Positions 4,970-49,621 of a DNA stretch of 64,000 bases are shown here, piece by piece (within the stretch, counting starts at the first letter, position 1; each line of letters begins with the position of its first letter). The position numbers were made by a program, and so were the translations under genes. The stretch lies in sequence record KY499642.1. One strand, written 5' to 3'. The notes beneath the pieces were generated by a model. The model saw only the letters and a program-made list of their open reading frames with translations. It did not search any database and was not told the DNA's origin.

Positions 4970-5118
4970 TGTAATACTCCGATTGTCTCACAGATAAGGG
5001 CTTTCTCATAGGATTTCTTTTTTTGTCAACATTACACCGTAGATCTAGAGTCTAGCAGGGTTCTGCGAATAAAAAAGGCAAATGCTATGTGTAGATGCCA
5101 AATAGAAGAGGAGACAAC

Positions 5119-7126: not shown

Positions 7127-7162
7127 ATGTACACACAATGAACTTTTATAAACGAGGTAATA

Positions 7163-31429: not shown

Positions 31430-31467
31430 AAATAAAGAGAGAGGGCCTTAGCCCTCCTCTTTTTTTT
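31430..31467. terminator. bidirectional intrinsic terminator
   Basis: A-rich flank, GAGGGC-CTTA-GCCCTC, T-run; between convergent units. Confidence 0.85.
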
Positions 31468-32139: not shown

Positions 32140-32161
32140 TATTATCTCCAAACTTTCAGTG

Positions 32162-32590
32162 TTACGAACGCGGTAGGAACGCAGGTGCTTTCGGCCACAC
32201 TATACGTGCAGGGAAGCCACCTTGTTGAGGAACGTCCAGTAACTTCTCACGGTATGTGGTTAAAGCTTGCTGTTGTTCTTCAGTCAATGCATTCCAGCGA
32301 AGTGGGTTGCTAACATAGGTATCTAAGATGCCTAGAAGTGCGTCACGTGTTGCGCGCTGTCTGTCTGCATCAGATTTACCGTCAATTAACAATTCAGGAC
32401 GTTGACGTACATCGCGTACAAGATTATGCTTACGATCCCATACAGCAAACTCAGGATAAACATTATTCTGAATTTCCTCAGGAGTCCTGCTATTAATCTC
32501 CAACACTTCCAACCCTTCAGTAAATAACCCCTCTAGGGTTGTACCAATGTAGTTGACAGTGTTGTCAGGGTTAAGCAATACAATTGCCAT
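32162..32590 (-). CDS. tail fibre assembly chaperone
   Basis: RATRDALL...WNAL...YREKLLDVPQQGGFP..IVWPKAP. Confidence 0.85.
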   Translation of the reverse strand: MAIVLLNPDNTVNYIGTTLEGLFTEGLEVLEINSRTPEEIQNNVYPEFAVWDRKHNLVRDVRQRPELLIDGKSDADRQRATRDALLGILDTYVSNPLRWNALTEEQQQALTTYREKLLDVPQQGGFPARIVWPKAPAFLPRS

Positions 32591-32599
32591 ATTTTACTC

Positions 32600-33997
32600 C
32601 TACGAAATACCAATTGAACGGTAACGGAAACGCCAGCGACGGTCTTCGGTGTGGTTAGTGTGGTATGAGTACGCACCTACCATAACCGACCCATCTGGAC
32701 AAGTCCAATCAACTACTTGGTCAAAGCCGTTAACGTAACCCGTAATCTGAACACCACCCCATGAAATAGCGGGCTTGTTAGTCTTCAGGTTATTGACTTC
32801 TTGCTGTAGCGATTGAATTGAACTTGCGTGTGTATTTAGTGTTTGATCTTGAGTGGTGTTCTTCTCTTCGACCAAACGAACACGTTCCGTCAACTGCGAC
32901 ATACTCGTTGCAAATTGTTCATCCACAGTTTTCTGGCGTTGCAATTCAGCGTCATGTTCAGCGTCTTTTGCTTCCAGTTCTGCAATCTTAGAGTCATGCC
33001 CGTCGTTACGAGTTTTCTCTTTATTGATATCTTGGATGTTTTTATCAATCGCCGCTTGGAGTTCTTGGTCACGTTGTTTCAAGCCAGTGATTTCATTATT
33101 GATGTCGTTGATTTCATCATTAATGGTTTCGATAGCCGCGTTCACATCTGCAATGTTCAGGTGAACTCGTGACAAAGATTGCGCATTTTGGTTCAACTGT
33201 AGGTTGTTGTTGTTCAGCGCTTGAACTAAACCATCGATACGGTCATTGATATCAGAGATACCATTAACCAGTGAACGGAAGCGAGGTTCCAAGTCTCCCA
33301 GTGCCACATTCAGCACTTGAACGATTTGGTCGATACGTTCTTTATCGTAACAGTTGACTTGTTCCGCACTCACCTGATGTGGATTGTTTAAATCATCGAG
33401 GTGTTCTTGATGCAATGTGCGTAGAGTAGACTCTAACGCATCAATGCGTGCACGGACTTGTTCGAACTGAGCGTTGTCACCGATCATAAGAGTATCACGA
33501 ATGTGACCTAGCACGTCGATAAGGAACTCAAGACCGAAGATGTCACCGAAGTCGTGCATATGCGGAGTTGGCTGGAACAGGTCTGGCTTGTCGATGACGT
33601 TCTGCCAGTAAGTGTTCTTGTTGTTGATTTCAAGTGCATCGATAGCATCTTGGATGGCTTGTGCAGATTGTGCAAACGGGCCACCTACGATGTTAGCACT
33701 CACGGTAACGTCCGTAGAGACAGCAGTGTTATGTACTACGATAACGCCACAGATTTCTTTACCGGGTGTAAGCGCGGTCAAGTCCTCGTAGAAGAATACG
33801 CACTCGTAATCATCTCCACGCTTCAACAGTTTACCAGAGTTGCGCTCCCGGACAGCCAAGTCCTTGGTGTAGAACGGGCCATTCTTTAGCGCAAATGCAC
33901 GGTACTGCTGAGTGCCGAGTGTGTGGTTTTCTTCTACACGGTTTGATTCACGATCACCTCTTAAATCCAATGGATAGATGAACTTTTTCAAAGCCAT
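32600..33997 (-). CDS. short tail fibre: conserved N-terminal anchor, coiled coil, C-terminal dermatopontin-like repeat
   Basis: FIYPLD N-term shared with 3 paralogs; NNPH motif; heptad-rich middle; tip TGYVNGFD...CPDG...SYHTNHTEDRRWRF. Confidence 0.8.
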   Translation of the reverse strand: MALKKFIYPLDLRGDRESNRVEENHTLGTQQYRAFALKNGPFYTKDLAVRERNSGKLLKRGDDYECVFFYEDLTALTPGKEICGVIVVHNTAVSTDVTVSANIVGGPFAQSAQAIQDAIDALEINNKNTYWQNVIDKPDLFQPTPHMHDFGDIFGLEFLIDVLGHIRDTLMIGDNAQFEQVRARIDALESTLRTLHQEHLDDLNNPHQVSAEQVNCYDKERIDQIVQVLNVALGDLEPRFRSLVNGISDINDRIDGLVQALNNNNLQLNQNAQSLSRVHLNIADVNAAIETINDEINDINNEITGLKQRDQELQAAIDKNIQDINKEKTRNDGHDSKIAELEAKDAEHDAELQRQKTVDEQFATSMSQLTERVRLVEEKNTTQDQTLNTHASSIQSLQQEVNNLKTNKPAISWGGVQITGYVNGFDQVVDWTCPDGSVMVGAYSYHTNHTEDRRWRFRYRSIGIS

Positions 33998-34041: not shown

Positions 34042-34437
34042 TTAATCTTTAGCGTCTGGCGATTTAGGCCATACAACAGTATCCAGACTTGTGAAGTCCA
34101 TACCGTAAAGCTCAGCACGATATTTACGCCATGCTTGCAGCTTAGCCTCAGCTTCTTCAGACGGTGTAAATTCTACAACATCATTCAAAGTATCAATCTG
34201 AGTTTTAGCAGTTTCCATTTCGTAAACGTGCTTCTGCTTGGCTTCTTCCAGCAGTTCTTTTTCGGTGTAGACGATATCAACGATAATATCATTACCATTG
34301 TCATCTTTACCAAGTTGGATTTTGCTGATGTCAAGGGATTCATCAGATTGAAGCATGATGATGTTCTCAGGAACAACAGGCTCCATATCGATAGACCATT
34401 GACAACGGCCAGTTTCTTTGTTAAATCCGTAATACAT
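34042..34437 (-). CDS. tail fibre assembly protein (Tfa/Caudo_TAP-like)
   Basis: AKTQIDTLND...AKLQAWRKYRAEL...VVWPKSP; ATG 34437 abuts upstream stop. Confidence 0.85.
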   Translation of the reverse strand: MYYGFNKETGRCQWSIDMEPVVPENIIMLQSDESLDISKIQLGKDDNGNDIIVDIVYTEKELLEEAKQKHVYEMETAKTQIDTLNDVVEFTPSEEAEAKLQAWRKYRAELYGMDFTSLDTVVWPKSPDAKD

Positions 34438-34438
34438 T

Positions 34439-37400
34439 TTACACCTCTGGATTCTTACGAGCAATTAGATAGTAACGAGCATTACAGCCCAAGGGATTCG
34501 TGACAACTGAACCACCTGCTAGACGTATTGTGATATTACAAGTAAGTCCTGACAGTACCGCTTTCGCGTAGGTCAGTTTAGAAGTTGAAGAACTATGGTT
34601 GAATGAAACAACCGCGTGACAGTCAGCCGCCGTAAAGCCGATAGGGATTGGGAGTGTATGACCACCGCCAATAGTACCTGTAGCAAACGCAACTGCTTCT
34701 GCTTGACGCTCCGAGAGGATACGAATGGTATCCGCAGAAGCGTAGTAGTTACCAACGTTCTCATCTGGGCGCAGGATGTTGATAAAGGTTGAGTTAGGCT
34801 GAGACATACAGCCGTAACCGAACCGACCACCAGATTTGAACTGCTGTAGCTCCGTGAACTGCTGCAAATCAAACTCATGGACAACTTCGATGTGTTCTTT
34901 ACCATGGTCTTCTAGCTTCGTACTTTTAATGAAACGAGTTGCCGAAACCACGAACTTCTCACCTTTACGTACGGCAGTGATACGTGAGTAGTTACCGCCC
35001 CAACCGCCTGCATTAGCGCCAGTACCGCCACCAGTTTTGATAAGTTTACGAGACGGCAGATGGTAATCGTACCAAATGTCAAACTTACCGCTGATTGCCA
35101 TATGTCCTTCAATTGACTGTGCACGCACCGCACAGATTGTGTGCTCGATACCCTGAGCATCTTCAATGAAGGCTAGGATAACTGCAACCGCATCGTTATC
35201 CCCGTCAGGTGAACCGACCAATGTATCAAAAACGTAATCGCCTACTGGTGCAGGACTTACAAAGCCTACAAACGTGGCAGAGTTGATAGTACATTTGATT
35301 GTATCTGTCGCTTCTGTATACGTCCAACTTGATAACTCACCAGGGTTATGTGGTTGCGTGGCACTGTCCTTAAAGTGCGAAATACGCTCCCACGAATTGA
35401 ATACCTCTTTAAAGGTAGGCAATGTTAACGTGTGTATCATCCCCATGTTCTCAACTTTACCCAAACTGAATGAGTTCTTGTCAAGGTTGGTGATGTCATT
35501 GTGCGCCCGACGGTCGTAGATATGCTCCTCTAGTTCATAAATCATACCAAGGCGTGTAGCACGGTCAACCTTTAGTTCATTGATTTGTGTGTCGCCTGTG
35601 ATGGCATAACCAATGTACATGCTGGTTTCGGAGTCAGCTGTCTTAGTTAGACTAAACTTGTAGTTCGCAGTACCAACACCCTCATTATCGTACGTAACTT
35701 CCACGTAAATGTAGAAAGTCTTGTTTTGATAATTTGGGAACTCAGACATCTTCGATAAGTCGAAGTTCTGGATTGGTAGTTCTAAACTCTCACCCGCAAC
35801 GTAAAAACGTGCGGCCTCAGTAAAGTATACAACCCATCCAGAAGCTACCTGAGTAGCATGAATGATTTGCGATGATAGATAAGTATTACCGCTCATCTCT
35901 GCAACAGTTCTACCAAGTTTCTTAGCGGATACAACCTGCGCCGCATATTCGTTTACTGTATCAATTAGACCAATGTCTGGATGCCAGTAAGACGCATACA
36001 TTACGTGAGTGTGTGCATTTCGGTTTCGTTCATACAACACGGAACCGTCATCTTTATCCAAGACAATTTGGAAGATGCGACCACCTGAGTGACCTACATA
36101 ACTCACGTATAGCGAATGGTTCAAACAGTAGACTTTGTGACCATCGTCCGTAGTGCCACAAGTATTCATGCCAAACGACTCGAAACTACCCCAACCTACA
36201 ACTGAGTTATTCCAGTTAGGGTTAGAGATTAACTCGCCGATATTAACGCTTGCTACCGCAGCACCAGCCATGGTGATTGTACACTTGTGCGTTGCAGTGA
36301 ACACACGACGTGAAGACTTAGCAGCATCCGCCCAGAAGACATATGTGTACTGGATAAAACATACAAGTGTGTTAGCACCCTTTTCCCAATCGCCGAATGC
36401 GTGAAGCATCACGCGGTCTTCCCATAGCGACATACCGCCTGTGGCTGGATGTAACGCACGGAAACGAGTACGTAAGTCTGCTACTAATGCACTACTCCAA
36501 CTCACCGGACTCGTTGGGGTTTCATTCACGATTTTGGAATTATTCGTAGGGTATGTTGACGAAATCACGAAACCTTCGTTCTTATTCGTATCCCAGTTCA
36601 TCGGCACACGAATTAACCGTGCATTGTCACCATTTGGCAATAATCTTCGGTCAGAAGTTGGACCCCAACCTGTGCCGTCTTCTACATAACTCCCGTTCAA
36701 ATCGTAAGTACAAATTGTATCACGACCATCTAACTGATCACTTATCAACTTGTTACCCGGCAAGAAGCCCATGTATTTAGTACCAGCACCGACAACAGAA
36801 CCGTAGGCACCTTCAAAATCGGCGGCTGTAATAGTAACCGGGTTTGACTTACCAGCTTCCAAGTAATCAAAAACCGAAAGGTCAGTGCCAGACTTAAACT
36901 CATACACACGCGGAATGTACGTTGTTCCGTAGAAACGGAATGCAAACATTCTATCTCTCGTAACTAGCACAGGCGTGTTATTGTTCGGGTTAGCGCCAGT
37001 CCACGCCTCCGCAGGTGCAGATTTACCCGCAGGCATTTCCCAACGATTGTTATACAGCTTAATTGGGAAACAATCCGCATTATCAGACACCATTTGCATC
37101 GTATCTAAATCTAACACAAACGAATGTGATAGTGGGTAACCTGTCGAGCCATCCGAACGTGAGTAGTAGGTTCTACCGTAAACCTGCACGCGTAACTTAT
37201 TATCCTTAATATAGAACATTGAGTTTTGCGTTGAGTGTCGAACGTTGTTAGAGCCACTCCAGTGACCATTATCAAGACGATGGATGATTGGCTTATCACC
37301 ATCCAAGTTATTTGCCTGGCCGAGGGTAGTAAAGAAGAACGTTTCGGTGTCGTTCTGAGCATTACCCTTCCAGTCATCACCGTTTAGACCAACACGTTCT

Positions 37401-39589
37401 AACGTGATCGGTCGACCCGCTTCGATATCTGAAATCTTAGCTTTCCAGTGACGACTATAACAACCACCGTTACCAAAGTAATGAAAGTGGAAGTGAACTT
37501 CATTCTTGTACAAGAAGATAGAACAACCGTTACCCAATGGACAGCCATTTAAGTCAACAATTTCAGCACCTACGTGTTTAGACATATCCATAGTACTACG
37601 GGTCAGTACTAGGTAGTACTTGCCATTAATTGTAGACAATGGAAATACTGTCTCACTACCACGGTGCGTATGACTTACACGGTCGCCATCTTCAATAAAG
37701 TTTGGGCGGTATTCAGTTGTAGTCGTTACTGTTTTAGAGAACGTTCCATCCGTTTTAAACTCACCGTACCAGTAATATACACCTTTATTAGCATGGTCAG
37801 CACCGTTACGCAATAGTACCAAACGCCCATCTGCTTCAATACAGCCCACTGCCACACCAGAACCTGTACCAGCAGCACCATATGAACCCAACACTGGCAA
37901 CGGTAGATAACCAAATCCACCATATTGCATAATGTCAAATGGCAGCGACGGCATCTTACCACTCAGGTTACTCTCTGCAACCAACTGGCTCTGGTATGCA
38001 TCATTCAGCATTACTGGAGTAGCTGCAACATCGTCACGAGACGACTGTGTAGTCGTTAGCTTAGTCATACCGTATGTATCATGGTCAGCATAAGGGATGT
38101 TCGTGAAGTCCGAGTTAGGGTGTGAGTGCGCAGCATTTGCTTTTGCCGCTGCTGCTGATTTAAACGCATTACTCGCAGGCTTGTTTTCCGGAGCAGTGTC
38201 GTTCACATTACCCAGACCTAAGTCTGTTTTAGTAATGGTAATGTCTTGGTTTAGACGATGACCATTAATGGTGAATGTGTTGTCTACCTTTTCAGAGGCT
38301 AGCCTATTCAGGTTGTACAATGCACGTCCTGATGCTGCCATGTCTTTACTATCCGAGTAAATCGAATGATTAAGACGGAACACACCGTTAGTGGTTGATG
38401 TTGCTACAGGGTAGAACACGTAACCAGTTAGTGGCGAACCACTAAGACCACGACCAGCTAGATAAACAGTTTCAGTCGTCTCTACATGCAGAATTGTATC
38501 GACATAATCAGGCGGCGGCATGAAATCAGCAAGGTTGCCGACATGGATGAGGTAGAAGCCGTTATACACCGCTGTGTCGTCATTACCTGCATCCGAGTGT
38601 ACTGTTAACAGGTTATCTCCCGAACGGAGTGATGCAGTGATTTTATCATTACCACCACTTGCATCTGCTTCTAACACAATGTTACTGTTAGAGAGGATGT
38701 TCAAGTCACCATTAACAAGGTTAATCAGTGCTGAACCACCTTCGTTTTGAATGATGACGTTTGAACCATCGAAACGTAAACGACCTTCCAGTGTGTCGCC
38801 GATTAGACGGAACAGGTTATCTGTGTCTTCGGCATTTTCACCCAGTAGGTTAACCAACGTAACCAAATCGGCTAGGACGTAACCATACGCTTTCAATGAG
38901 TCTACTGCGGTATCATCACGATGTAGCGCGTTGAGCTGCGCCGCTGTAATGCGGTGACGACCACGTTTATCTTCGTGGTTATCCACGTCATGTGCATGGA
39001 TTTTGTTGGTTAAAGCAATCAGTGCGGCGATGACATCATCATACCCCTGCTTCTGAGCTTCGTTAAGACGCTCTAGAGCCTTTCTTACGCGGTCTAGGGC
39101 ACCAGTAGGTAAATCGTTAGCAATCGCTTCATCGATGTTTGCAGGCGCATCTACGGATGGGATAGCCATCTCGTAACGCATCACATCTTCCCAGTCTAAG
39201 TTACGTGGGTCACGCAAATCAACTTGGTTAAGATGGACATCAATAACACGCTTAAGCATGTTGTAGCGACCACCGAGAGTTCGGTACTGTACAAATTCAA
39301 TAGTGCCAGATAACGTTTGATCGATTATCATCACACTACCAAAAATCGGCATCTTGTTTTCTTCAGATGCTGCTTTGTAATAGTGACCGAGGTAGTAGTC
39401 AATACCCTCGTGAAGGGTGCGATCTTCCTCTACGTGACGTAGTGTGAGATCTTTGCGATAGAACGGCGCAAACAGAGGAATGATACATCCCCATTTATTA
39501 GGGTAGTCCTCAAGCTTGTGCTGTTCCCCTTTGACCAAACATAGAGGGTTAGTTCCCTCCGGGTCGTAAGGATAAGCGTAATCTGACAT
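34439..39589 (-). CDS. large tail/baseplate fibre protein (paralog 1) with TSP_C-like domain near C-terminus
   Basis: YAYPYDP N-term, LGLGNVND fibre motif, DGDNDAV...GGRFGYGCMSQ. Confidence 0.85.
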   Translation of the reverse strand: MSDYAYPYDPEGTNPLCLVKGEQHKLEDYPNKWGCIIPLFAPFYRKDLTLRHVEEDRTLHEGIDYYLGHYYKAASEENKMPIFGSVMIIDQTLSGTIEFVQYRTLGGRYNMLKRVIDVHLNQVDLRDPRNLDWEDVMRYEMAIPSVDAPANIDEAIANDLPTGALDRVRKALERLNEAQKQGYDDVIAALIALTNKIHAHDVDNHEDKRGRHRITAAQLNALHRDDTAVDSLKAYGYVLADLVTLVNLLGENAEDTDNLFRLIGDTLEGRLRFDGSNVIIQNEGGSALINLVNGDLNILSNSNIVLEADASGGNDKITASLRSGDNLLTVHSDAGNDDTAVYNGFYLIHVGNLADFMPPPDYVDTILHVETTETVYLAGRGLSGSPLTGYVFYPVATSTTNGVFRLNHSIYSDSKDMAASGRALYNLNRLASEKVDNTFTINGHRLNQDITITKTDLGLGNVNDTAPENKPASNAFKSAAAAKANAAHSHPNSDFTNIPYADHDTYGMTKLTTTQSSRDDVAATPVMLNDAYQSQLVAESNLSGKMPSLPFDIMQYGGFGYLPLPVLGSYGAAGTGSGVAVGCIEADGRLVLLRNGADHANKGVYYWYGEFKTDGTFSKTVTTTTEYRPNFIEDGDRVSHTHRGSETVFPLSTINGKYYLVLTRSTMDMSKHVGAEIVDLNGCPLGNGCSIFLYKNEVHFHFHYFGNGGCYSRHWKAKISDIEAGRPITLERVGLNGDDWKGNAQNDTETFFFTTLGQANNLDGDKPIIHRLDNGHWSGSNNVRHSTQNSMFYIKDNKLRVQVYGRTYYSRSDGSTGYPLSHSFVLDLDTMQMVSDNADCFPIKLYNNRWEMPAGKSAPAEAWTGANPNNNTPVLVTRDRMFAFRFYGTTYIPRVYEFKSGTDLSVFDYLEAGKSNPVTITAADFEGAYGSVVGAGTKYMGFLPGNKLISDQLDGRDTICTYDLNGSYVEDGTGWGPTSDRRLLPNGDNARLIRVPMNWDTNKNEGFVISSTYPTNNSKIVNETPTSPVSWSSALVADLRTRFRALHPATGGMSLWEDRVMLHAFGDWEKGANTLVCFIQYTYVFWADAAKSSRRVFTATHKCTITMAGAAVASVNIGELISNPNWNNSVVGWGSFESFGMNTCGTTDDGHKVYCLNHSLYVSYVGHSGGRIFQIVLDKDDGSVLYERNRNAHTHVMYASYWHPDIGLIDTVNEYAAQVVSAKKLGRTVAEMSGNTYLSSQIIHATQVASGWVVYFTEAARFYVAGESLELPIQNFDLSKMSEFPNYQNKTFYIYVEVTYDNEGVGTANYKFSLTKTADSETSMYIGYAITGDTQINELKVDRATRLGMIYELEEHIYDRRAHNDITNLDKNSFSLGKVENMGMIHTLTLPTFKEVFNSWERISHFKDSATQPHNPGELSSWTYTEATDTIKCTINSATFVGFVSPAPVGDYVFDTLVGSPDGDNDAVAVILAFIEDAQGIEHTICAVRAQSIEGHMAISGKFDIWYDYHLPSRKLIKTGGGTGANAGGWGGNYSRITAVRKGEKFVVSATRFIKSTKLEDHGKEHIEVVHEFDLQQFTELQQFKSGGRFGYGCMSQPNSTFINILRPDENVGNYYASADTIRILSERQAEAVAFATGTIGGGHTLPIPIGFTAADCHAVVSFNHSSSTSKLTYAKAVLSGLTCNITIRLAGGSVVTNPLGCNARYYLIARKNPEV

Positions 39590-39621
39590 CAGGTTAAACC
39601 TCTTATCTTTGTTATTCGAGA

Positions 39622-39659
39622 ATAATACAAAGGATGATCAACCGTTTGGCTAATCATCC
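39622..39659 (-). terminator. intrinsic terminator between fibre genes
   Basis: - strand GGATGATTAGCC-AAAC-GGTTGATCATCC then TTTGTATT. Confidence 0.65.
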
Positions 39660-39671
39660 CCTGCATTCATT

Positions 39672-42600
39672 TTAGACGTCCCTCAGACCTGCCAGCAGGT
39701 AGTTTACATAACCCGTCTTAGTGATTGGTGCAGACCCACCCTCTGACTCCGTCTTATACTGAGCTTCGACATACATGTAACGGTCGAGCGTTAGCATATC
39801 AATCCGTGATTCAGTGATGACGTTACCTGTAATGACTGAACGGATACGATGCTCAAGACCATCAATCGGGTCAGTATTTCCCTCAGTACCCATCGCATGC
39901 CAACCTAAGTAGACATTTACATAACGGCAGTTTGGAAGTAATGGTAGTTCTGCATTATTTACAGCCCCACCCTTGGCAATCAGTAAGTTAACGCCATCAC
40001 GTAGCGATTGGTATACACCTTTCGCGGTGATGTATTTCTTATCTTGACTACCTTCATCCGCAGCAATGCAATCAATGTATAACAACACTGAGTTAGCACT
40101 ACCCACCTCGGACGCCGGATACATGTTACCGCCAAACCCAATAACTCCAGAATCAATTGCTTTCTTAATGTTACCGTTGACATACCCTTTGTTGTTATCG
40201 CTACCTGTTGCCGTGTAATGCGTAATACGTTTACCTAATTGTTCCATACGAACGTCCATGTCGAAACTATCGTCACGGAAGTCTAAGTCAACACGAACGG
40301 TATCTATACGGGAAGTATAGACCAATGCGTCGTACTGATACTCAACAGCATAGTGGAAACCGTCAGCAGTTTCCCAGTATTCGAATATCATGTATAAACG
40401 ACCGTGTTGCGGCGCCACTTGCCAGTTACCGATATTAACGTGCGCTAGGTCTTGCTCAAACACACCGTTACGGTATTGACGTAGCCATACTTGTTTCTCG
40501 TTATAGAAACGGAACGAGTGTGCAAGTACGATATCAATAGTGTCACCAGCATCATCCACGTAAGAACCAAGAATAGCATGCCAGTTATTAACTGATTGCG
40601 TTCCCGTGTCGGCTCCCGGATTTAACACGTATCCCAACTTACGTTTACGTACGCCATTTTCAGGCTCATCGGACACATATGTAGGATCATTGAACTTCAT
40701 ACGTTGATTGCGGATTGCTAAGTACTGAGTACCTCCAGTCTTCCACGGGATAGTTACCATCACACCGTTACTGACCGGAATACCGTTATTGTCCAACGTA
40801 CGTGGTAGTGAAACAACGTTTTCGGCAGCCTCAACATCCCAACCTGTGAAGTAATCCCATTCATCGATACCGTTATGGCTGCCGTCTGAGATTTGACTCA
40901 CTACATCATAGTTGTGGATCAAGTCAAGACCAATCGTACCCGCATCACCTACAGCCCCGTCACCAATGTGCGCAGTTGGGTCATCCTCGTGCTCTTCAAG
41001 CTCACGGAACATACCGACTGAAGTAACTGAGTCAATATCTAGGATACCACTCACGTTGTCATCATAAATGTGATCGGATGTTCCTGTCTCCTGAGTCACG
41101 TTAGCGATTGCTGAAGCACCACACTTAATTGTGGAGATATGCAAACGACCCACTGCGTTAGTCAGCTTGTCTTTGCTAGCACTATAGAAGATGGAGTCGT
41201 CTTCCACATTAATGTAGATGTAGAACGTTTCATTAACGTAAGCATTCGGGAACAACGTTGCAAAGTTCAACGTGCCGCCCGGAACTGGCAAGTCTACACG
41301 TTCCGCATAGTTGATACGGTTCATGTACAACTCAGCATCCGCCGGGAACGTAATTGCCAGACCACTACAAGTAACGTCAGCAGTTGCACGCCAGTAACGA
41401 ACGTCCAAAACGTCAGCAGGCATCTTACCTTGAGAAGCTGTTGCCACTTCAACAATCTTCGATGCGTACTCACCCACCAATTTGGGTGTTATCGCCGCAT
41501 TCACATCAGAGTCAGACATACTTACAGCATGTCGGGTAACACCGAGCTCAGTACTCGTCGCTCTTTCCAATTCCACGCCAGTTAAGTCGTGTTTGTGGCT
41601 ACCTTCGGAGTATTGGTCAAGTAAACGCTGTTGCTCAGTCGAGATTGGCTTAGCTGCATCTGACGTGTTGTCTACCTTATCCAGATAAATGTCATCTTTA
41701 TCTAAACTGAAGTTACCCGACATTACATGACCGTTAATCACTCGCGCTTTAGGCACACGTCCGTCTAGGTCTTTACGCATGACATTAATCACGTAAGGCG
41801 TAGGCGCTTCTGTCAAATTGTTAGCAGTACGTGAGTTGGTTAACTTAACCGTGCCACGTTTAGACAATGTGGCAACTGGAAGTACCACACGCGCTTTAAG
41901 TGGCGTGTCAGGACGTGATGTTCCTTCCCATTTAATAGTGTCAGTGTCTTGCGTAACAACACGCATACCGACACCACCTTTCTCTCTTAGCTTCGCGCGT
42001 ACCGTACCTTGGTGAATCACCTCATGACCATTGTAACGTAACGTGTCTTTAGTACGTCCGTTACGACCACTTGAAACAATTTCCAGAATGTTTGCACCTG
42101 CCATGAACTTCATACGCTCACCGACAGTTTGTACATCACTGTCTGCCATGATGGCGAGAAGCTCATCTGCACTGATTGTGATATCGCCCGTTGATAGGTC
42201 AATTGACGTTGTACCACTTTCACTGCGGATAACCGCTTGGTTATTCTTCAGCGTTAGTCGGTCATCATAAACCTGATCACCAAACTTAGCCAAATACTTA
42301 CTGACGTCCGCTTCTGTAATACCACGGTTGTTAATGTAGTCAGCTAACTCCACTAACGTTTTGTTGAACGCACGGAACGTATCAACGGCTTGAGCGTTCT
42401 TTTCCAACGCATGGACTTGCGTTGCCGTAGTCTTATGAGGGTTCCCATAGTCCACGATATGCGTATCTTGACGATACTGGTTCAATAGGGCATCTACAGC
42501 GTTAACACGCGCTAGGAGGTCACCTACGGCCCCACTGTTGGCATTCTCGATTGCTTCATCGATTGCTGCTGCCAATCCATCAAGTTCTGCGGCCACGCCA

Positions 42601-43073
42601 TCTTTATTTACGAAGTCAGCGTAGTGCTGTTCGTGTTTAGCCGGAGTGAAATAAGCAGGTCTATCAATAACCTTTTCAAATGGCGTCTTGACAGGATCGT
42701 TCAATGCGTTTGCTAGATACGTCAGTACGTTACTGCGAATACCAACAAAGTTACCACCGACGGTTCGGTAGCCGACGATGAACTCACCTTTAAGTTGCGG
42801 GTTGATTAACACAATACAACCAAAGAGGTCACGCTGTGCAATCTTCTTAGCAGAGAGGACACGGTAACCTAGGTTATAGTCCTTTCCTTCTTTTAGTTCC
42901 AGACCGGACTCAGCATGTACAATGCTCAAGTTCTCAGTATAGAACGGTGCCATCTCAGGAACGATAACACGGTAAGTATTATCGTTAGTCAAGATAATGT
43001 GACTTTCATCCTGAATATGGCACTCATCCCTCGTACCCGCAGGGTCGTAGGGATAAGCGACCATAATCGTCAT
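39672..43073 (-). CDS. tail/baseplate fibre protein (paralog 2, shorter)
   Basis: VAYPYDP N-term, GNPH, YLDKVDN, TFYIY; lacks the long central region of paralogs 1 and 3. Confidence 0.85.
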   Translation of the reverse strand: MTIMVAYPYDPAGTRDECHIQDESHIILTNDNTYRVIVPEMAPFYTENLSIVHAESGLELKEGKDYNLGYRVLSAKKIAQRDLFGCIVLINPQLKGEFIVGYRTVGGNFVGIRSNVLTYLANALNDPVKTPFEKVIDRPAYFTPAKHEQHYADFVNKDGVAAELDGLAAAIDEAIENANSGAVGDLLARVNAVDALLNQYRQDTHIVDYGNPHKTTATQVHALEKNAQAVDTFRAFNKTLVELADYINNRGITEADVSKYLAKFGDQVYDDRLTLKNNQAVIRSESGTTSIDLSTGDITISADELLAIMADSDVQTVGERMKFMAGANILEIVSSGRNGRTKDTLRYNGHEVIHQGTVRAKLREKGGVGMRVVTQDTDTIKWEGTSRPDTPLKARVVLPVATLSKRGTVKLTNSRTANNLTEAPTPYVINVMRKDLDGRVPKARVINGHVMSGNFSLDKDDIYLDKVDNTSDAAKPISTEQQRLLDQYSEGSHKHDLTGVELERATSTELGVTRHAVSMSDSDVNAAITPKLVGEYASKIVEVATASQGKMPADVLDVRYWRATADVTCSGLAITFPADAELYMNRINYAERVDLPVPGGTLNFATLFPNAYVNETFYIYINVEDDSIFYSASKDKLTNAVGRLHISTIKCGASAIANVTQETGTSDHIYDDNVSGILDIDSVTSVGMFRELEEHEDDPTAHIGDGAVGDAGTIGLDLIHNYDVVSQISDGSHNGIDEWDYFTGWDVEAAENVVSLPRTLDNNGIPVSNGVMVTIPWKTGGTQYLAIRNQRMKFNDPTYVSDEPENGVRKRKLGYVLNPGADTGTQSVNNWHAILGSYVDDAGDTIDIVLAHSFRFYNEKQVWLRQYRNGVFEQDLAHVNIGNWQVAPQHGRLYMIFEYWETADGFHYAVEYQYDALVYTSRIDTVRVDLDFRDDSFDMDVRMEQLGKRITHYTATGSDNNKGYVNGNIKKAIDSGVIGFGGNMYPASEVGSANSVLLYIDCIAADEGSQDKKYITAKGVYQSLRDGVNLLIAKGGAVNNAELPLLPNCRYVNVYLGWHAMGTEGNTDPIDGLEHRIRSVITGNVITESRIDMLTLDRYMYVEAQYKTESEGGSAPITKTGYVNYLLAGLRDV

Positions 43074-43088
43074 GTTTCACCTCGTTAA

Positions 43089-46000
43089 TTAAATCATTCG
43101 CACGTCATTGAAGAACGTAATGTTGTATCGCAACAATGCAGTGTAGAAACCACCACGGTTATGACTCAGCGCAGTAAAGCGAATCACATCACCAACACGT
43201 TCATGCGATAGTGCCATAGTTGTAATACCGCCACCTGAATCCGAAGACTGGTCAATGTTGTACCACGCGTGATAGTTCATGTCTCGGTACTCCACGGGGA
43301 TTGGCACGTCGTACGTATCGGTGTCGCCACCGTTCACGGTCGGCGCAACTACACCGCTGATGGTTTTCAGACGGCTAGACCAACTGAAATTATCACGGTA
43401 CAGCTTCTGAGACGCGTAGAAGTTCTTACCATCTTCATCAGGACGCAAGATATTACGCCAAGTTGACGACGCTTGAGACTGCGCACAGTAGCCGAAACGT
43501 ACAGCACCGCGGAACAACGCAGCAAGCTCAGGGTGGTCTTTAACATCAAAGCTAAAGGTACGCTCTGTCGCCGCGTCAGTCATCATCTTAGTCACGTGGA
43601 TAGTGAACACATCACCACGACGTTTAACTGTAATGATACGTTCTGGGATTTCATCCCATCCGTGTTTCAAAGCAGTTGTATGTGAGTACAACGTTTTCTG
43701 GCCACGATTGGCGGTTTGGTTCCAGTTGTAATGTACTGAGAAGTGATCATTACGCGTATCTGTGCCCGAACACAGTGCTGTCAGCGTATGCTGAATCCCA
43801 TCCTTTTCCACCATGGCGAAGATAACACCGATCCAGTCATCATCACCGTTAGCTGAATTAACGCCAGTAATGAAATCATAGTCACCTACTGTAACGTCAG
43901 CAGGAGATACCATGCCAACGAAGCTAGAGCTGTTGGTTGTGTTAAAGATGGAGTCAGTTGCTGCGTTATACGACCACGTGGTTGTCTCCGCAGGGATTGC
44001 CGGGTACGGTTTCTCAGCTTGATGTGACAAACGGTACCAGCCATCGAATATCTCCTTAAAGGTTGGAACGACCAGTGAGTGACGAATGTCTTTGTTCTCA
44101 AGCAGACCTAAACCGATGTCATCGGTGGTTACCTGTGACAAATCCAAACCGTGTGGTTTAGGATCGGTTAAGTGCTCTGTGAACTCTCGGAAGTCGCCCA
44201 TACGTGTTGCACGGTTAACTTGCAAGTCGACAATCTTCTCATCCGTAGTACGACAGAAGCCAATGTAGATTTCTGTTGAACTGTCTGCCACATACTGCTC
44301 TTTAATCACGTAGTGCGCTACACCACCCTCAACCGACGCGTAGATGTAAAACGTGTTTGACTTATATGTGGACGGGAATAACGTCGACAAGTCTAACCCG
44401 GTTTCAGGGATCATGAATCGTGTACTGTTGATAAAGAACTGCACATCCTGAGTGAAGTATACTACCCAACCCTCAGCCACCTGTGAGGTGTGAAGCACCA
44501 CCGTTTCTTTGTACGAGTCCTTGTTAGCGTAGAACACTTTCCAATCCGCAGCCGTCTTACCAATATGACGTGCAGTAATCGCAGTAAAGGAGTTGTGCTG
44601 TAAAGGAATCACCAGACCGTAATCTTTGGTAATCATCATGCCACCTGCACGGTAGCTATACATGTCGGTGTTATGCATGTGTGCCGGATCAGGAGTTCCA
44701 GAACTATAATCGATTTCCACAAGGAATGACTTCGTGTGACTACCGTAATAGAAACTACAGTTTGTGTTCAACACAAACAACATCTTACCTGAGGCTTCAT
44801 CATCAATGATACCACTGTTAGGTAAGTAGTCTCGCGGCGATGAGTAAGACGCGTAACGACTTGCACCACCTGCTGACCCTAACGTACCACGGACACGGAA
44901 GTTACCAACACTGCCACTACGGGGAACGTTTTCAAGCGTACCCACTTTGTTTATACTACGAACAGCCCCATCCGATGCTTTAACGAAACGACCTACCGCA
45001 GTCCACATTGGCGGAATACGTTCATCTGGGAGGATATACACCACCACATCCACGCCTTGCAGCGTATCCGAACCTGCATCCGCTTCAAAGATAGGCTCAA
45101 GTGCCGCAGAGAGCGCATCCAGATGCTCGACTGTGGTTGAAATGCTACCGCTTGTATTGTGGCTCGCATCCATCGTGGTCCATGTAGATAAGCTTGCTTT
45201 ATGTAAAATACCACCGAAAGCAAGTTCAACATCCGACCCGTTAGTGAAGTAGACGTTATGGCGATACTTCCGCCAATCACCCGCATACTTACGGTCAACG
45301 TGTGGCCCGTAACCTTTCATGCCATTTGCAAATGTGTAATTAGGTACAAACTTACACATATTCCACCCGCTGTAACTATGCAAGTAGCGATTAGGTAGCA
45401 TAGCAACATGTCGTTGCATTACACCAACCGCACTACCAAAGTTACCAGTCAAACTAGGTCGAGAACCGATCGTCTGGATAGAACGGTTTGCTGCATGTAG
45501 TGAGTCGAAGTAATCTGCATTGTTATACTTCTGACCACCCGCACTCGGTGTAGATTCATTGTGAGTGTGCCACACCGCTGTAAATTTACCGTCACTAATT
45601 TCACCAGCACCAATATTACCACCATTCATCCAACCCATACTCTGGCTATTGTTCGCACCCATATTACCGCCGTAGTTATTACGACCATTAAACACATACG
45701 GGAGGTTTCGGCCTGAGTCAATAACCAACTGACGTGTGGCTAGGTTGACGGTTACACTGTACGACCAGTTATAGCGAGATGAGTCAAATGACGATGATTC
45801 ATAACTACCGACCTTAACAAAGATGCGAAGTAAATCACCTTTAATCGCCATCGCTAAACCGATGTTGTTCCAGCGCGGATTAATCGAGTAACGTGTATCT
45901 TTTCGAATACAGATAGCTTCTGCATTCTCATCATCACTCCAGTCATTACGGCAAAGTACAATGGTAGAACCCGACTGCTGCTCATTAAAGAAGTCAGTAC

Positions 46001-48233
46001 CTGAGATAACAACCTCTTCAAAGTTAGCCACACCGAATTCATCAAAGTCAGAAAGTGGTGCACGATAGAACGCATGTCGGATACCGTAACCATTACCAAC
46101 CCATGTGCCAATGTAATACACATAGTTGCCAAAGATAATAGGCGTTGGATCAGCGACACCTAGATTGTCAGGTAACAAGGCCACTTTATGGTTTTCACCA
46201 TTACCTGAGTTATTAAAGATAACAACCCCAGGGTGCTGATTACCCGCAGCATCTTTTAGACGAACATACATCCCATCACGAGAACCGCGCAGACAGTACA
46301 GAACTTCCCACCCTTCCGGCAAGGTGCCCGGACGATAACGCGTTGCCGTGGCAACGTAGTCAGTAATACTACCATCGCTTAGGAACGTAGCGTACGCGTA
46401 GAAGATACCTTGAGTAACTAAGTCATAACCGTTACGGTAGAAGATACATTTACCATCCTCTTCTACAAAGCCTGCCATCTGGCGTGCCGACTGGTAGTGA
46501 CCAGAACCTTCATACGAGCCTTGGACTGGAATAGGCAGCCAGTGGTTACCGCCATATTGAGTGATGTCAATTACATCATCGGGTAGGCGCGTACTAGTTA
46601 CAAACTCCAAGTCCATTACTTCGGTGTTCAAGTCCGACAGTTTAGCCGCAGAGAAACCGCGGTCAGTTGCACTTGACGTAGGATCATCACTTAAGAACGT
46701 GATACCATAGGTAGCCTCAGTAGCACGCGCAAAGCCCATTTCCGCAAAGGAGTGCGTGTGGTCACCCACTGCTTTATTCGCCAGTAGGTTCTCATGGTTC
46801 TGATTGACAGGCATATCCATATCGCTCAGGTTATCCACGTTACCTAAACCAAACTTGTCCTTAGTAAGGGTAATGTCGCGGTCAAGTCGAATGCCATTGA
46901 TTTTAACCGTGTCTGGAACCTTGGCTTTAATCTTAGCATCTACTTTAGCAGTGCCTTGACTTAACGCCACCTTAGTAGGTTGGTCTTTGGTTTCATCAAC
47001 AGTACCTACGGCAATACCAGAAACCGATGTTGTTGCGTCATCAAGTGTTGCGTCAGCCTTTAACGGATTACCTGCGACACCCTTACCTGAGAAATTCAGC
47101 GAAACACTGTCCTTAGTTTGGATATCGATGATGTGAGTGCCTGCGTCTGGCACATGCGCTTCTAAGTTACCGTCATGAATGATGGTCTTGTCATTGATAC
47201 GCAAGTCATCATCCGTTTGAGTCGCACCACGCGACGTTACAGTTAGTTCTACATCGCCAGAACGTAAGGTCGCCTTAGCACCCGGACTGTTCTTGTCTCT
47301 ATCAGCATGAACCAACGCATCAGAGATAGCGTCGAAACCAATGTTACCATTCGACATGTTAATACGCAGATACGCATTGTTTGAATGTAAGAACTCGATG
47401 AACATCAGACCGTCTTTCAGTACGATATCGCCTACTACAGTGTTACCGCCACTACGCTTAACGTAGTTATCCAAGTCAGCTTGAGTGATACCACGAGAGT
47501 TCACATAGTCAGCCAATTGGTTGATGGTCATGCCAGCGACTTTAGCCGTGTCTTTAGCGATACCTGCTTCATGCAGCGCTTGTGACTCGAACCATACTTC
47601 CCCGTGAGGGTTATTGAAGTTGTCTTGATGTGTCTTTAGAGGAGACTCATCCACAACCTTTTTCAGTTGCAGGAACCAATCATCCAACAGCATGTACATG
47701 TCGTTAGTCGTTTGGTCTTTGTTACGAACCACATCTGCGATTTCACGAATTGCAGTTTGAACGTTCTCTTCATCTACGAAGGTATCGCGGTCGAACTGTA
47801 GGTCAACTGGTGGGAACACAGGATCGTCATTAATGACTTCTTCCCATGTTGCGTGTTGTGGGTCAGTTTGACGATTTGTTAGGTAGTCGTCAATGATTGA
47901 ACGTTGGACAGGGAACTTACCGCCAAGTGTGCGATATTTAACTGTTACCGTTCCTGAAAGTTTCGGGTTGACAATCCAGATACCGCTATACATCAACTTA
48001 CCAGTACGCTCAATACCAGTAAAGTATTTATGCGATAGGTAGTAGTCAACACCCATGAGCAACGGTTTGTTGTTGCACTTAACTTCAATCTCCAAGTCTT
48101 CAAAGAACGGAGCGAAGTTAGGGATGATGACACGGTACGGGGACATTGTCGCACTTAGCACATGCGCTTCGTCACGTACGATGTTGTCATCGTTAGCAGC
48201 ATGTGGGTCAAACGCATACGCAAACTGTGGCAT
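43089..48233 (-). CDS. large tail/baseplate fibre protein (paralog 3) with TSP_C-like domain near C-terminus
   Basis: FAYAFDP N-term, NNPH, FGLGNVDN, NGDDDWIGVIF...VRFGYCAQSQ. Confidence 0.85.
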   Translation of the reverse strand: MPQFAYAFDPHAANDDNIVRDEAHVLSATMSPYRVIIPNFAPFFEDLEIEVKCNNKPLLMGVDYYLSHKYFTGIERTGKLMYSGIWIVNPKLSGTVTVKYRTLGGKFPVQRSIIDDYLTNRQTDPQHATWEEVINDDPVFPPVDLQFDRDTFVDEENVQTAIREIADVVRNKDQTTNDMYMLLDDWFLQLKKVVDESPLKTHQDNFNNPHGEVWFESQALHEAGIAKDTAKVAGMTINQLADYVNSRGITQADLDNYVKRSGGNTVVGDIVLKDGLMFIEFLHSNNAYLRINMSNGNIGFDAISDALVHADRDKNSPGAKATLRSGDVELTVTSRGATQTDDDLRINDKTIIHDGNLEAHVPDAGTHIIDIQTKDSVSLNFSGKGVAGNPLKADATLDDATTSVSGIAVGTVDETKDQPTKVALSQGTAKVDAKIKAKVPDTVKINGIRLDRDITLTKDKFGLGNVDNLSDMDMPVNQNHENLLANKAVGDHTHSFAEMGFARATEATYGITFLSDDPTSSATDRGFSAAKLSDLNTEVMDLEFVTSTRLPDDVIDITQYGGNHWLPIPVQGSYEGSGHYQSARQMAGFVEEDGKCIFYRNGYDLVTQGIFYAYATFLSDGSITDYVATATRYRPGTLPEGWEVLYCLRGSRDGMYVRLKDAAGNQHPGVVIFNNSGNGENHKVALLPDNLGVADPTPIIFGNYVYYIGTWVGNGYGIRHAFYRAPLSDFDEFGVANFEEVVISGTDFFNEQQSGSTIVLCRNDWSDDENAEAICIRKDTRYSINPRWNNIGLAMAIKGDLLRIFVKVGSYESSSFDSSRYNWSYSVTVNLATRQLVIDSGRNLPYVFNGRNNYGGNMGANNSQSMGWMNGGNIGAGEISDGKFTAVWHTHNESTPSAGGQKYNNADYFDSLHAANRSIQTIGSRPSLTGNFGSAVGVMQRHVAMLPNRYLHSYSGWNMCKFVPNYTFANGMKGYGPHVDRKYAGDWRKYRHNVYFTNGSDVELAFGGILHKASLSTWTTMDASHNTSGSISTTVEHLDALSAALEPIFEADAGSDTLQGVDVVVYILPDERIPPMWTAVGRFVKASDGAVRSINKVGTLENVPRSGSVGNFRVRGTLGSAGGASRYASYSSPRDYLPNSGIIDDEASGKMLFVLNTNCSFYYGSHTKSFLVEIDYSSGTPDPAHMHNTDMYSYRAGGMMITKDYGLVIPLQHNSFTAITARHIGKTAADWKVFYANKDSYKETVVLHTSQVAEGWVVYFTQDVQFFINSTRFMIPETGLDLSTLFPSTYKSNTFYIYASVEGGVAHYVIKEQYVADSSTEIYIGFCRTTDEKIVDLQVNRATRMGDFREFTEHLTDPKPHGLDLSQVTTDDIGLGLLENKDIRHSLVVPTFKEIFDGWYRLSHQAEKPYPAIPAETTTWSYNAATDSIFNTTNSSSFVGMVSPADVTVGDYDFITGVNSANGDDDWIGVIFAMVEKDGIQHTLTALCSGTDTRNDHFSVHYNWNQTANRGQKTLYSHTTALKHGWDEIPERIITVKRRGDVFTIHVTKMMTDAATERTFSFDVKDHPELAALFRGAVRFGYCAQSQASSTWRNILRPDEDGKNFYASQKLYRDNFSWSSRLKTISGVVAPTVNGGDTDTYDVPIPVEYRDMNYHAWYNIDQSSDSGGGITTMALSHERVGDVIRFTALSHNRGGFYTALLRYNITFFNDVRMI

Positions 48234-49576: not shown

Positions 49577-49621
49577 AAAAGTTGGAGAGAGGGTTTAGCC
49601 CTCTCCCTCTTTTATTTTTTT
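49575..49621 (+). terminator. intrinsic terminator
   Basis: GAGAGGG-TTTAG-CCCTCTC then T-run; A-run upstream. Confidence 0.8.

Follow-up and report, generated by a model that had tools for sequence, protein, structure and literature searches.

The tail fibres of the Vibrio phage pVa-21, a jumbo phage, carry an L-type lectin domain whose nearest described relative is the C-terminal L-lectin domain of thrombospondins and COMP, with the W...N...DDD segments of the two in register, and which most likely grips sugars on bacterial surfaces, not animal tissue. The window analysed (64,000 nucleotides, positions 62001-126000 of KY499642.1) encodes three tail-fibre proteins, pVa21_123, pVa21_125 and pVa21_089, each with one such domain of about 215 residues, close to the C-terminus in the first two, and the copies are paralogous. 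We favour, with a probability of roughly 0.6, the reading that these L-type-lectin copies constitute a putative calcium-stabilised glycan-binding module, placed before a variable tip and acting on the bacterial envelope.

The domain of pVa21_123 lies at 34748..35431 on the minus strand (family-HMM envelope, aa 1387-1614, E 1.5e-81), its translation showing a DND motif at nt 35192-35200 (minus strand), and that of pVa21_125 at 43422..44081, also on the minus strand (family-HMM envelope, aa 1385-1604, E 4.3e-77), with a translated DDD motif at nt 43836-43844 (minus strand). Both envelopes contain the domains that a first-pass annotation, made from the letters of the window, had placed at 34766-35392 and 43440-44039, and the motifs it quoted are all found there (W, I..TxNS, DY.F, DND or DDD with a hydrophobic strand, GW, and RFGY...SQ) in the order given; the spacing was miswritten, W standing 9 and not 6 residues before I and the gap from DY.F to DDD being 9 and not 6, which is immaterial. 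Absent from that annotation was the third copy, in pVa21_089, at 5839-6570 on the plus strand (family HMM E 4.9e-69, and tblastn; DDD at 6064-6072), which clusters with Derbicusvirus-type copies in a neighbour-joining tree. Identity between the pVa21_123 and pVa21_125 copies is 38% (tblastn E 7e-38), a match well outside what chance would give, and the best-scoring other ORF of the window reaches E 1.3 against the family HMM.

The proteins bearing the first two copies are giant fibres. pVa21_125 (43089..48233, minus strand, 1714 aa, an intact ORF) matches phrog_7449 over its full length and is a 'putative tail fiber protein' in GenBank; pVa21_123 (34439..39589, minus strand, 1716 aa, likewise intact and identified by ORF and PHROG) is 28% identical to it over the full length of pVa21_125, and is a 'putative membrane protein' in GenBank, where its start is set 17 codons downstream of that of the ORF; translated from the ORF start, the protein matches its paralogues right from the beginning. 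Between them, pVa21_124 (39672..43073, minus strand, 1133 aa, from ORF and PHROG) has aa 6-558 and the pre-lectin module in common with both, anchor and shaft being alike, and is without lectin domain or tip, the family HMM giving no match in it; its C-terminal ~400 aa are its most divergent part relative to phage pVp-JHP1101 (42-68%). The third lectin copy sits in the short fibre protein pVa21_089 (5095..6723, plus strand, a 542-aa ORF recovered by tblastn and the family HMM). None of these four genes is disrupted (0 stops, 0 frameshifts).

Beyond the lectin domain, pVa21_125 ends in a tip of ~110 aa plus stop (43089..43421, minus strand) that can be aligned over 71 aa (32%, E 8e-8) to the corresponding tip of pVa21_123, itself ~102 aa plus stop (34439..34747, minus strand). 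The latter tip is restricted to the pVa-21 lineage, its tblastn matches being only pVa-21 and pVp-JHP1101 (71.6%) plus one weak match in an Aeromonas phage, and it diverges more than the lectin domain does between pVa-21 and pVp-JHP1101; identity of the pVa21_125 tip to its pVp-JHP1101 orthologue, 60-78%, is also below that of the lectin domain. At the 3' end of pVa21_123 lies pVa21_122, a tail-fibre assembly chaperone gene (34042..34464, minus strand; phrog_136/188/105, tail fibre assembly, and GenBank), followed on the minus strand by a 465-aa fibre-like protein (32600..33997; phrog_2163), a second tail-fibre assembly chaperone gene (32162..32590; phrog_4912/4628/8746) and pVa21_119, a lytic transglycosylase or endolysin-like gene (31507..32151; phrog_315 and GenBank) that is the last of the fibre operon, at whose end a bidirectional terminator-like hairpin is seen in the sequence (31440..31457). 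The 465-aa protein has the N-terminal anchor of the three giant fibres, its first ~210-265 aa matching pVa21_124 (blastp E 1e-18), pVa21_125 (E 8e-10) and pVa21_123 (E 1e-5), and this anchor, common to four pVa-21 paralogues, recurs in 285 phage records, among them many from jumbo phages that infect Pseudomonas, Erwinia and other genera. The giant proteins match PHROG tail and virion families, with weak Phage_fiber_2 matches in Pfam, and their anchor N-terminus, fibre repeats and adjoining assembly chaperones are those of phage tail fibres or receptor-binding proteins.

AF2 models were built for the copies of pVa21_123 (pLDDT 90.1, pTM 0.89) and pVa21_125 (pLDDT 89.2, pTM 0.89), and in these two independent models the predicted fold is an L-type-lectin/ConA-like beta-sandwich, a two-sheet jelly roll matching several members of the ConA-like lectin/glucanase superfamily (which we take to be Pfam clan CL0004). 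In Foldseek comparisons with the PDB, which bore out the proposed likeness to TSP-1 and COMP, thrombospondin or COMP had the top TM among the matches listed for both models: COMP 3fby_A at 0.60 and thrombospondin-1 1ux6 and 2rhp_A at 0.54 and 0.53 for the pVa21_123 copy, and thrombospondin-1 2rhp_A and 1ux6 at 0.57 and 0.53 for the pVa21_125 copy, all others listed being at or below 0.51. The modelled sandwich, of similar size, can thus be superposed on the solved thrombospondin/COMP domains (TM 0.53-0.60), with a structure-based identity of 12-13%. The best Foldseek E values (~1e-5 to 1e-4) fall elsewhere, on peanut lectin, CBM66 and the CBM2 of the J-1 distal tail protein (Dit) for the pVa21_123 copy and on legume lectins for the pVa21_125 copy, with the L-lectin module of S. 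aureus SraP and Lactococcus YwfG also in this range, and matches further span galectins, SPRY, GH16, alginate lyases and DUF1080-type proteins.

This breadth invites the reading that the domain is a generic ConA-like one, its likeness to TSP_C, D-x-D included, being due to convergence or to kinship at clan level only. Foldseek E values are similar for many ConA-like families, with legume lectins first, and the three window copies and their full-length proteins give no match to Pfam TSP_C (PF05735) at E up to 1-10; nor do the window domains have any Pfam, NCBIfam or PDB sequence match, or the family profiles reach the thrombospondin chains of the PDB. The sole above-threshold Pfam match, that of the phage relative P0159 (25.9 bits, E 1e-5), exceeds the gathering score of PF05735 (25.6 bits) by 0.3 bits within the first 60 profile positions, and P0171, 62% identical to P0159, has no TSP_C match. 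Yet P0159 and the pVa21_125 domain share 38% identity (E 2e-47), and three independent members of ~127, P0159 together with P0048 (E 0.016) and P0164 (E 0.042), both below threshold, match TSP_C out of 24,736 models in the same register, all covering profile positions 4-60 (about 56 of 198), that is, domain positions 36-92, with no other ConA-clan family among the matches listed. Moreover, the top PDB sequence match of P0159 among 177,635 sequences is thrombospondin-1 (1ux6_A), with W and N aligned and DDD on DDD; by index arithmetic we infer the triplet to be D1001-1003 in mature numbering. The link by sequence to TSP_C is borderline. Because the fold and the top TM values point to TSP-1 and COMP, P0159 passes the TSP_C threshold and DDD aligns on DDD, the likeness nevertheless goes beyond that of a ConA-like domain devoid of the DDD site, and a purely generic kinship seems to us rather unlikely. 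The first-pass description of a thrombospondin C-terminal-like domain thus stands as regards fold and DDD register, whereas the Pfam TSP_C match that it proposed to look for is found in a relative and not in the window copies.

The triplet itself reads DDD in pVa21_125 and pVa21_089, and DND in pVa21_123 as against the DDD of thrombospondin-1, where two calcium ions are bound (PMC4501361, PMC6526912); the D-x-D of the phage domains is likely, from the aligned register, to be a calcium site as well. Family-wide, the motif positions picked out by the first-pass annotation are the best-conserved columns: over 196 distinct domain instances, W is conserved in 95%, N in 96%, the first D in 95% and the third in 98%, with D (71%) or N (26%) between them, followed by the GW tryptophan (97%), the G of GY (100%), S (97%) and Q (99%). 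Length-variable loops alternate with these conserved strands in the AF2 models, and domain positions 106-118, 136-148 and 168-182 are hypervariable.

Neither Pfam nor NCBIfam has a model for the family, which comprises 1155 clusters. The phages that carry it infect, among others, Bacillus, Erwinia, Cronobacter, Pseudomonas, Serratia, Salicola and Leeuwenhoekiella and come from soil, orchards, leaf litter, sewage and a saltern; chromosomal lipoproteins, including one encoded by a Bdellovibrionaceae MAG, have it too. BFVD places a pVa21_123-type domain in fibre proteins of Derbicus, PBS1, 0305phi8-36, PaBG and CP21. Domains found alongside it are Collagen (12 members), Peptidase_S74 (3), Baseplate_wedge (2), GP38, Collar and Phage_RBD_prop (1 each), and database annotation lists relatives as proteins of the virion, in one case from mass spectrometry. 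The domain is sub-terminal, with a median of 103 residues after it in 166 representatives.

The known mucus-adherence decoration domains are Hoc-type, Ig-like and borne on the capsid; in pVa-21 the modelled fold is that of a lectin sandwich and not of an Ig-like domain, and tail fibres, not the capsid, bear the domains, within a host-recognition operon that also encodes chaperones. This bears on the first-pass proposal of an array of metazoan-matrix-like adhesins that would hold the virion on marine animal surfaces or mucus. It is true that the closest relative with a name belongs to the animal extracellular matrix, that V. alginolyticus, the host, causes infections in aquatic animals (PMC6472347), and that L-type lectin modules can bind animal glycans, as SraP does (PMC4047093). 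However, the proposal finds no support, because the family is widespread, being present in the fibres of phages from many habitats that infect Bacillus, Erwinia, Pseudomonas and Salicola, and in Bdellovibrionaceae lipoproteins. Nor does anything point to acquisition from an animal or to an animal ligand: the base composition of the lectin domains matches that of nearby phage genes, identity to thrombospondin is as low as stated above, and the type-3 repeats and EGF modules that precede the lectin domain in thrombospondins are missing, Pfam giving no EGF or TSP_3 match in the giant fibres, where a phage-fibre shaft lies upstream and the setting is a fibre or lipoprotein, not animal matrix. Attachment to animals is accordingly a highly improbable role. 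A more credible, though still unlikely, alternative is that the domain serves structure or assembly and has no sugar ligand of its own, as a calcium-stabilised rigid platform for the tip or in contacts between fibres or between fibre and baseplate. It would explain why another 60-150 residues almost always follow the domain and why, in phages that differ in host, it has diverged less than the tip has, and this role recalls the thrombospondin DDD site, which acts in thrombospondin-thrombospondin trapping in the matrix, a protein-protein interaction and not sugar binding (PMC4501361). The same residues are invariant whether the phage host is Gram-positive, Gram-negative or a member of the Bacteroidota, and in lipoproteins too, which fits this alternative and a shared binding site equally. 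Against it, thrombospondin apart, the folds nearest to the domain are those of lectins and CBMs that bind sugars, some of them adhesin modules of phages and bacteria (PMC6115969, PMC4047093), the modelled loops of variable length between conserved strands resemble those of lectins of variable specificity, and free-standing versions of the domain occur in lipoproteins, where there is no fibre to hold up.

Recognition of bacterial sugars, the reading that we prefer, is favoured by the wide occurrence of the domain, which recurs in phage fibres and in some bacterial lipoproteins across many habitats, and by the sugars bound by experimentally studied analogues of the same fold, since the CBM2 of J-1 binds host cell-wall polysaccharide (PMC6115969) and the SraP L-lectin, with a calcium ion at its apex, binds Neu5Ac (PMC4047093). 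Each fibre, presumably a trimer, would present three domains directly ahead of a short, fast-evolving tip; calcium held by the invariant D-x-D would stiffen the apex of the sandwich, and a shallow site, built from the hypervariable loops and the invariant Trp, Asn, Arg, Ser and Gln, could make reversible, low-affinity contacts with envelope polysaccharide, presumably bacterial. Host-specific recognition would then come from the tip and the other fibre paralogues. The lectin domain is unlikely to be the main determinant of host range, because it is not the most divergent part between pVa-21 and pVp-JHP1101, which have different hosts and whose tips vary more, and because the variable loops are enriched in substitutions in the pVa21_123 copy and not in that of pVa21_125.

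Among known systems, L-type lectins (soybean agglutinin, peanut lectin, SraP and YwfG, with Foldseek E of 1.8e-5 to 1e-4) are apex-loop, calcium-dependent sugar binders on a stalk (PMC4047093), and their likeness to the phage domain is at fold level, with lower TM (0.40-0.51) and no Pfam legume-lectin match to the phage domains. J-1 Dit CBM2 (5LY8) and CBM66 (4B1M) are lectin-fold modules of about the same size (TM 0.41-0.49), without detectable sequence similarity; J-1 CBM2 differs in being inserted in a siphovirus distal tail protein and not a myovirus fibre, and its binding residues Asn, Trp, Phe and Gln (PMC6115969) recall, as a lead and in residue type only, the invariant Asn, Trp, Phe/Tyr and Gln of the family. 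The work on concanavalin-fold lectin domains (Laminin G3, SPRY) in jumbo-phage fibres (PMC7824862) and that on animal-like adhesion folds at Bdellovibrio fibre tips (PMC10769870), in the portions available to us, offer parallels in which folds shared with animals serve phages and predatory bacteria in recognising bacterial surfaces, an idea that the TSP_C-like family would fit; neither the pVa-21 lectin family nor a TSP_C-type member is described in those portions.

The thrombospondin/COMP L-lectin domain, with its DDD double-calcium site, is listed among the Pfam domains exclusive to matrix proteins in humans. One may tentatively entertain, while leaning against it, that this domain is not an invention of the animal lineage and shares a specific ancestor, with an ancestral calcium site, with a very large prokaryotic family of adhesins of phage fibres and predatory bacteria. 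At the level of architecture, pVa-21, a phiKZ-like phage (PMC12685585), resembles phiKZ, whose tail fibres are gp131 paralogues with N-terminal segments in common (PMC13250141), in having four proteins with one anchor; gp131 ends in a seven-bladed propeller, whereas the giant fibres of pVa-21 end in the lectin domain and tip.

The window matches bases 62001-126000 of Vibrio phage pVa-21 (KY499642.1) at 100% identity. The fibre operon of this 232-kb phiKZ-like jumbo myovirus, whose host is Vibrio alginolyticus (PMC6472347; PMC12685585), lies on the minus strand and comprises, in order, genes for the fibre proteins pVa21_125 (43089-48233, 1714 aa), pVa21_124 (39672-43073, 1133 aa) and pVa21_123 (34439-39589, 1716 aa), a fibre-assembly chaperone (34042-34464), a 465-aa fibre-like protein (32600-33997), a second chaperone (32162-32590) and a lytic transglycosylase (31507-32151), all of them intact, with no stops and no frameshifts. 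A bidirectional terminator-like hairpin (31440-31457) stands at the end of the operon, and a second (49585-49607) about 1.35 kb past its start, after a divergent plus-strand gene (48338-49576). pVa21_123 and pVa21_125 are full-length paralogues (28% identity, E 1e-153), laid out as an anchor and shaft (residues ~1-560), a large central region, a pre-lectin module (~1212-1383), a lectin domain and a tip some 100 residues long; the C-terminal region of pVa21_124, which stands where these two have lectin domain and tip, is different and unrelated. In GenBank, pVa21_123 is a “putative membrane protein” whose start lies 17 codons after the first ATG of its ORF, but label and start both look wrong, since the longer N-terminus can be aligned with the paralogues from its very first residues. 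An N-terminal anchor of about 200 residues, common to these three proteins and the 465-aa fibre-like protein and present in 285 phage records, recalls the fibres and hetero-oligomeric base of phiKZ, where gp131 paralogues have common N-terminal segments (PMC13250141). His-x-His and Glu-His...His motifs are conserved in pVa21_123, pVa21_124 and pVa21_125, in the fibre-repeat region (residues ~487-495) and just before the lectin domain (~1355-1365, or 690-700 in the equivalent pre-lectin module of pVa21_124). Such motifs bring to mind the metal-binding sites of other phage fibres. The synteny of the operon recurs on a 182-kb metagenomic contig (locus L022, 1-13451), where three giant fibre genes in a row are accompanied by a small gene of chaperone size and by genes for an S74-domain protein and a GH108 lysozyme; the third fibre on the contig is P0048, a lectin-family member considered below.

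The lectin domain spans 34748-35431 on the minus strand in pVa21_123 (residues 1387-1614, family HMM E 1.5e-81) and 43422-44081, also minus, in pVa21_125 (residues 1385-1604, E 4.3e-77), and these boundaries enclose the two stretches, 34766-35392 and 43440-44039, in which the first-pass annotation had seen domains like the C-terminal one of thrombospondin. The motifs it quoted are all present, two of their spacings being slightly and immaterially wrong as written, and their residues turn out to be the best conserved columns of the family: across 196 distinct domain instances, the W is retained in 95%, the N in 96% and the GW tryptophan in 97%, the aspartate triplet reads D (95%), D (71%) or N (26%), and D (98%), and the C-terminal motif keeps the G of GY in 100%, S in 97% and Q in 99%. 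A third copy lies far from the operon, at 5839-6570 on the plus strand (DDD at 6064-6072, E 4.9e-69), in the gene (5095-6723) for the 542-aa fibre protein pVa21_089. Beyond these three, no ORF in the window scored better than E 1.3 with the family HMM; a fourth, divergent copy in pVa21_124 was considered and rejected for want of any such signal. The pVa21_123 and pVa21_125 domains are 38% identical (E 7e-38) and are sisters in a neighbour-joining tree, their duplication predating the split from pVp-JHP1101, a related phage with orthologous fibres, while the pVa21_089 copy clusters with the Derbicusvirus type and not with the giant-fibre copies. The lectin-coding stretches equal their own genes in GC and GC3.

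AlphaFold2 models of the pVa21_123 copy (pLDDT 90.1, pTM 0.89) and, from a different, deeper alignment, of the pVa21_125 copy (pLDDT 89.2, pTM 0.89) are both beta-sandwiches of about 14 strands, with the D-x-D of the triplet at the end of the loop leading to the sixth strand. The two invariant aspartates of this D-x-D are residues 1464 and 1466 in pVa21_123 and pVa21_125 alike. Against solved structures, the Foldseek matches listed for both models were solely ConA-like/L-type lectin folds. The best E-values went to legume lectins (peanut lectin 3.9e-5, soybean agglutinin 1.8e-5), together with CBM66, CBM2 from the distal tail protein of phage J-1 and the L-lectin adhesin modules of the bacterial proteins YwfG and SraP; the top TM-scores in both searches were those of COMP (3fby_A, 0.60) and thrombospondin-1 (1ux6, 0.53-0.54; 2rhp_A, 0.53-0.57), every other match listed having 0.51 or less. 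Models and structural matches thus back the L-type lectin fold proposed earlier. Among predicted viral structures, Foldseek found the domain in proteins of the fibre or virion from Erwinia phage Derbicus, Bacillus phages PBS1 and 0305phi8-36, Pseudomonas phage PaBG and Campylobacter phage CP21.

A sequence link to the thrombospondin/COMP C-terminal domain (TSP_C, Pfam PF05735) came from other members of the family, some 127 of which were scanned against Pfam. P0159, a phage fibre-module protein of 351 aa whose gene lies two genes upstream of one for a GP38-type adhesin, matches TSP_C with 25.9 bits (curated cut-off 25.6; E 1e-5), and two further members, P0048 (E 0.016) and P0164 (E 0.042), do so below threshold; all three matches cover profile positions 4-60, corresponding to domain positions 36-92, which are exactly the W...TxNS...DY.F...DDD segment. 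P0159 shares 38% identity with the pVa21_125 domain over its full length (E 2e-47), and the first of its matches among 177,635 PDB sequences is the thrombospondin-1 chain 1ux6_A, at an E of 0.15 that is not significant alone, with W, the TxNS asparagine and DDD in register. By index arithmetic, the triplet aligned with the DDD of P0159 would be D1001-D1003 (mature numbering); the thrombospondin DDD is a double calcium-binding site of the L-lectin domain and is invariant in vertebrate thrombospondins (PMC4501361; PMC6526912). The Pfam check proposed at first pass therefore came out positive for P0159 and negative for the window's own proteins and domains, which have no useful match in Pfam, NCBIfam or PDB sequences. 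Likewise, a whole-fibre profile found no solved relatives, and P0164 had no match among PDB sequences. Because family profiles of three sizes recovered no thrombospondin from PDB sequences, only chance-level matches (fatty-acid-binding protein, alkaline phosphatase), and a relative 62% identical to P0159 has no TSP_C match, the kinship is borderline in sequence, where it is limited so far to the N-terminal third of the domain. The equivalence of the GW and RFGY...SQ motifs with thrombospondin, also suggested at first pass, is putative. We nevertheless consider a specific kinship to TSP_C likely, with a probability of roughly 0.7, and a likeness that is merely clan-level or convergent rather unlikely. 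TSP_C annotation in bacteria has a precedent in a cellulosome protein (PMC5256962).

The extent of the family emerged when 1.84 billion cluster representatives were searched exhaustively with an HMM, which found 1155 clusters at E <=1e-3, 931 at 1e-10 and 380 at 1e-30; word-index homology search was weak for the domain (17, 3 and 3 matches). The family has neither a Pfam nor an NCBIfam model, PHROGs holds it as part of phrog_33406, 36886 and 21285, and GenBank labels its proteins “membrane protein” or “hypothetical”. By tblastn, the domain occurs in 60 phage records, including those of Erwinia and Cronobacter jumbo phages (Derbicusvirus), the Pseudomonas phages PhiPA3, Psa21, PA1C and Lu11, the Bacillus phages PBS1, AR9 and 0305phi8-36, Serratia phage PCH45, Salicola phage SCTP-2 and a 43-kb Leeuwenhoekiella phage (name prefix vB_LaeS); matches in Ralstonia, Burkholderia, Sinorhizobium and Campylobacter phages are to its N-terminal half only. 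Tail-fibre partner domains in 64 mid-sized members are Collagen (12), Peptidase_S74 (3), Baseplate_wedge (2) and, once each, GP38, Collar and a receptor-binding propeller. Among 166 representatives, the domain hardly ever ends the protein, a median of 103 residues lying C-terminal to it, and thirteen proteins have two copies. In about a dozen short members, the N-terminus is signal-peptide- and lipobox-like; chromosomal contexts of such lipoprotein-like carriers are found at 4836-7146 of locus L017, 6001-7218 of L018 and 5001-6167 of L023, and the three contexts checked, those of P0019, P0040 and P0025, are ordinary chromosomal neighbourhoods. P0019 was placed in a Bdellovibrionaceae MAG, where one tandem pair lies; the sharing of one adhesion module by a predatory bacterium and phage fibres is suggestive. 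P0025 adjoins a discoidin-domain protein.

Siphovirus tails bear well-studied carbohydrate-binding modules of lectin fold. On jumbo-phage fibres, concanavalin-fold lectin domains (Laminin G3, SPRY) are noted in general terms in a review (PMC7824862), the only literature found on thrombospondin and tail fibres together, with thrombospondin merely in a reference title; no description of the present family, or of a TSP_C-type member in phages, was found in the literature. For gp163 of 0305phi8-36, the accessible part of a 2007 analysis recognises FN3 and intimin domains, not the lectin domain (PMC2147016). The results supply a name, a fold and a testable site for a domain unannotated in at least 1155 protein clusters, among them fibres of the much-studied jumbo phages PBS1, AR9, PhiPA3 and 0305phi8-36 and of Erwinia/Cronobacter Derbicus-like phages. 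A counterpart in phages and bacteria to the C-terminal domain of thrombospondin, its DDD calcium motif in register, would also bear on the origin of that matrix domain.

As to function, we infer a conserved, calcium-stabilised lectin module that would make generic, low-affinity contacts with envelope polysaccharide, specificity being supplied by the tip and by other fibre paralogues; calcium binding, sugar binding, a bacterial ligand and a trimeric state are all presumed here. Two experimentally studied modules of the same fold act in this manner, the CBM2 of phage J-1, which binds host cell-wall polysaccharide (PMC6115969), and the L-lectin of SraP, which has an apex calcium and binds sialic acid (PMC4047093). 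The serious rival is a purely structural or protein-protein role, with which the constancy of the invariant residues across hosts, the sub-terminal position of the domain and the use of the thrombospondin DDD site itself in protein-protein trapping would agree; set against the precedents of J-1 and SraP, we regard it as unlikely. Far less probable is the suggestion of the first-pass annotation that these are metazoan-matrix-like adhesins for residence on animal surfaces, countered as it is by the distribution of the family, by base composition and by location in a host-recognition operon; the present finding is no evidence that the phage lives on animal surfaces. Adhesion folds of an “animal-like” kind are known from prokaryotic fibres, where they are directed toward the surfaces of bacteria (PMC7824862; PMC10769870). 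An animal origin by recent transfer was rejected on base composition and family distribution.

Within the putative lectin module, conservation covers the N-terminal half and the two final strands, and three loops are hypervariable in sequence and length (domain positions 106-118, 136-148 and 168-182). The first of these, two strands after the aspartate triplet, would by strand count in the models be the counterpart of the thrombospondin-1 beta7/beta8 loop, which works jointly with the DDD site (PMC4501361). In a comparison of pVa-21 with pVp-JHP1101, which infects another host species, the lectin domains are 79-84% identical overall (80-92% in 50-residue blocks) and the tips 60-72%, and the lectin domain, less divergent than the tip, was rejected as the main host-range determinant. 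The tips of pVa21_123 (34439-34747, minus strand) and pVa21_125 (43089-43421, minus strand) are related (32% identity); tips of this kind are nearly restricted to pVa-21-like phages and change more quickly than the lectin domain does, and that of pVa21_123 is matched in hardly any other phage. Setting the conserved module apart from the fast-evolving tip aids the reading of host-range differences among pVa-21-like phages. The C-terminal region of pVa21_124 (the last ~400 codons), which has no family matches, is the most divergent stretch between the two phages, at 42-68% identity, and is a candidate host-specificity element.
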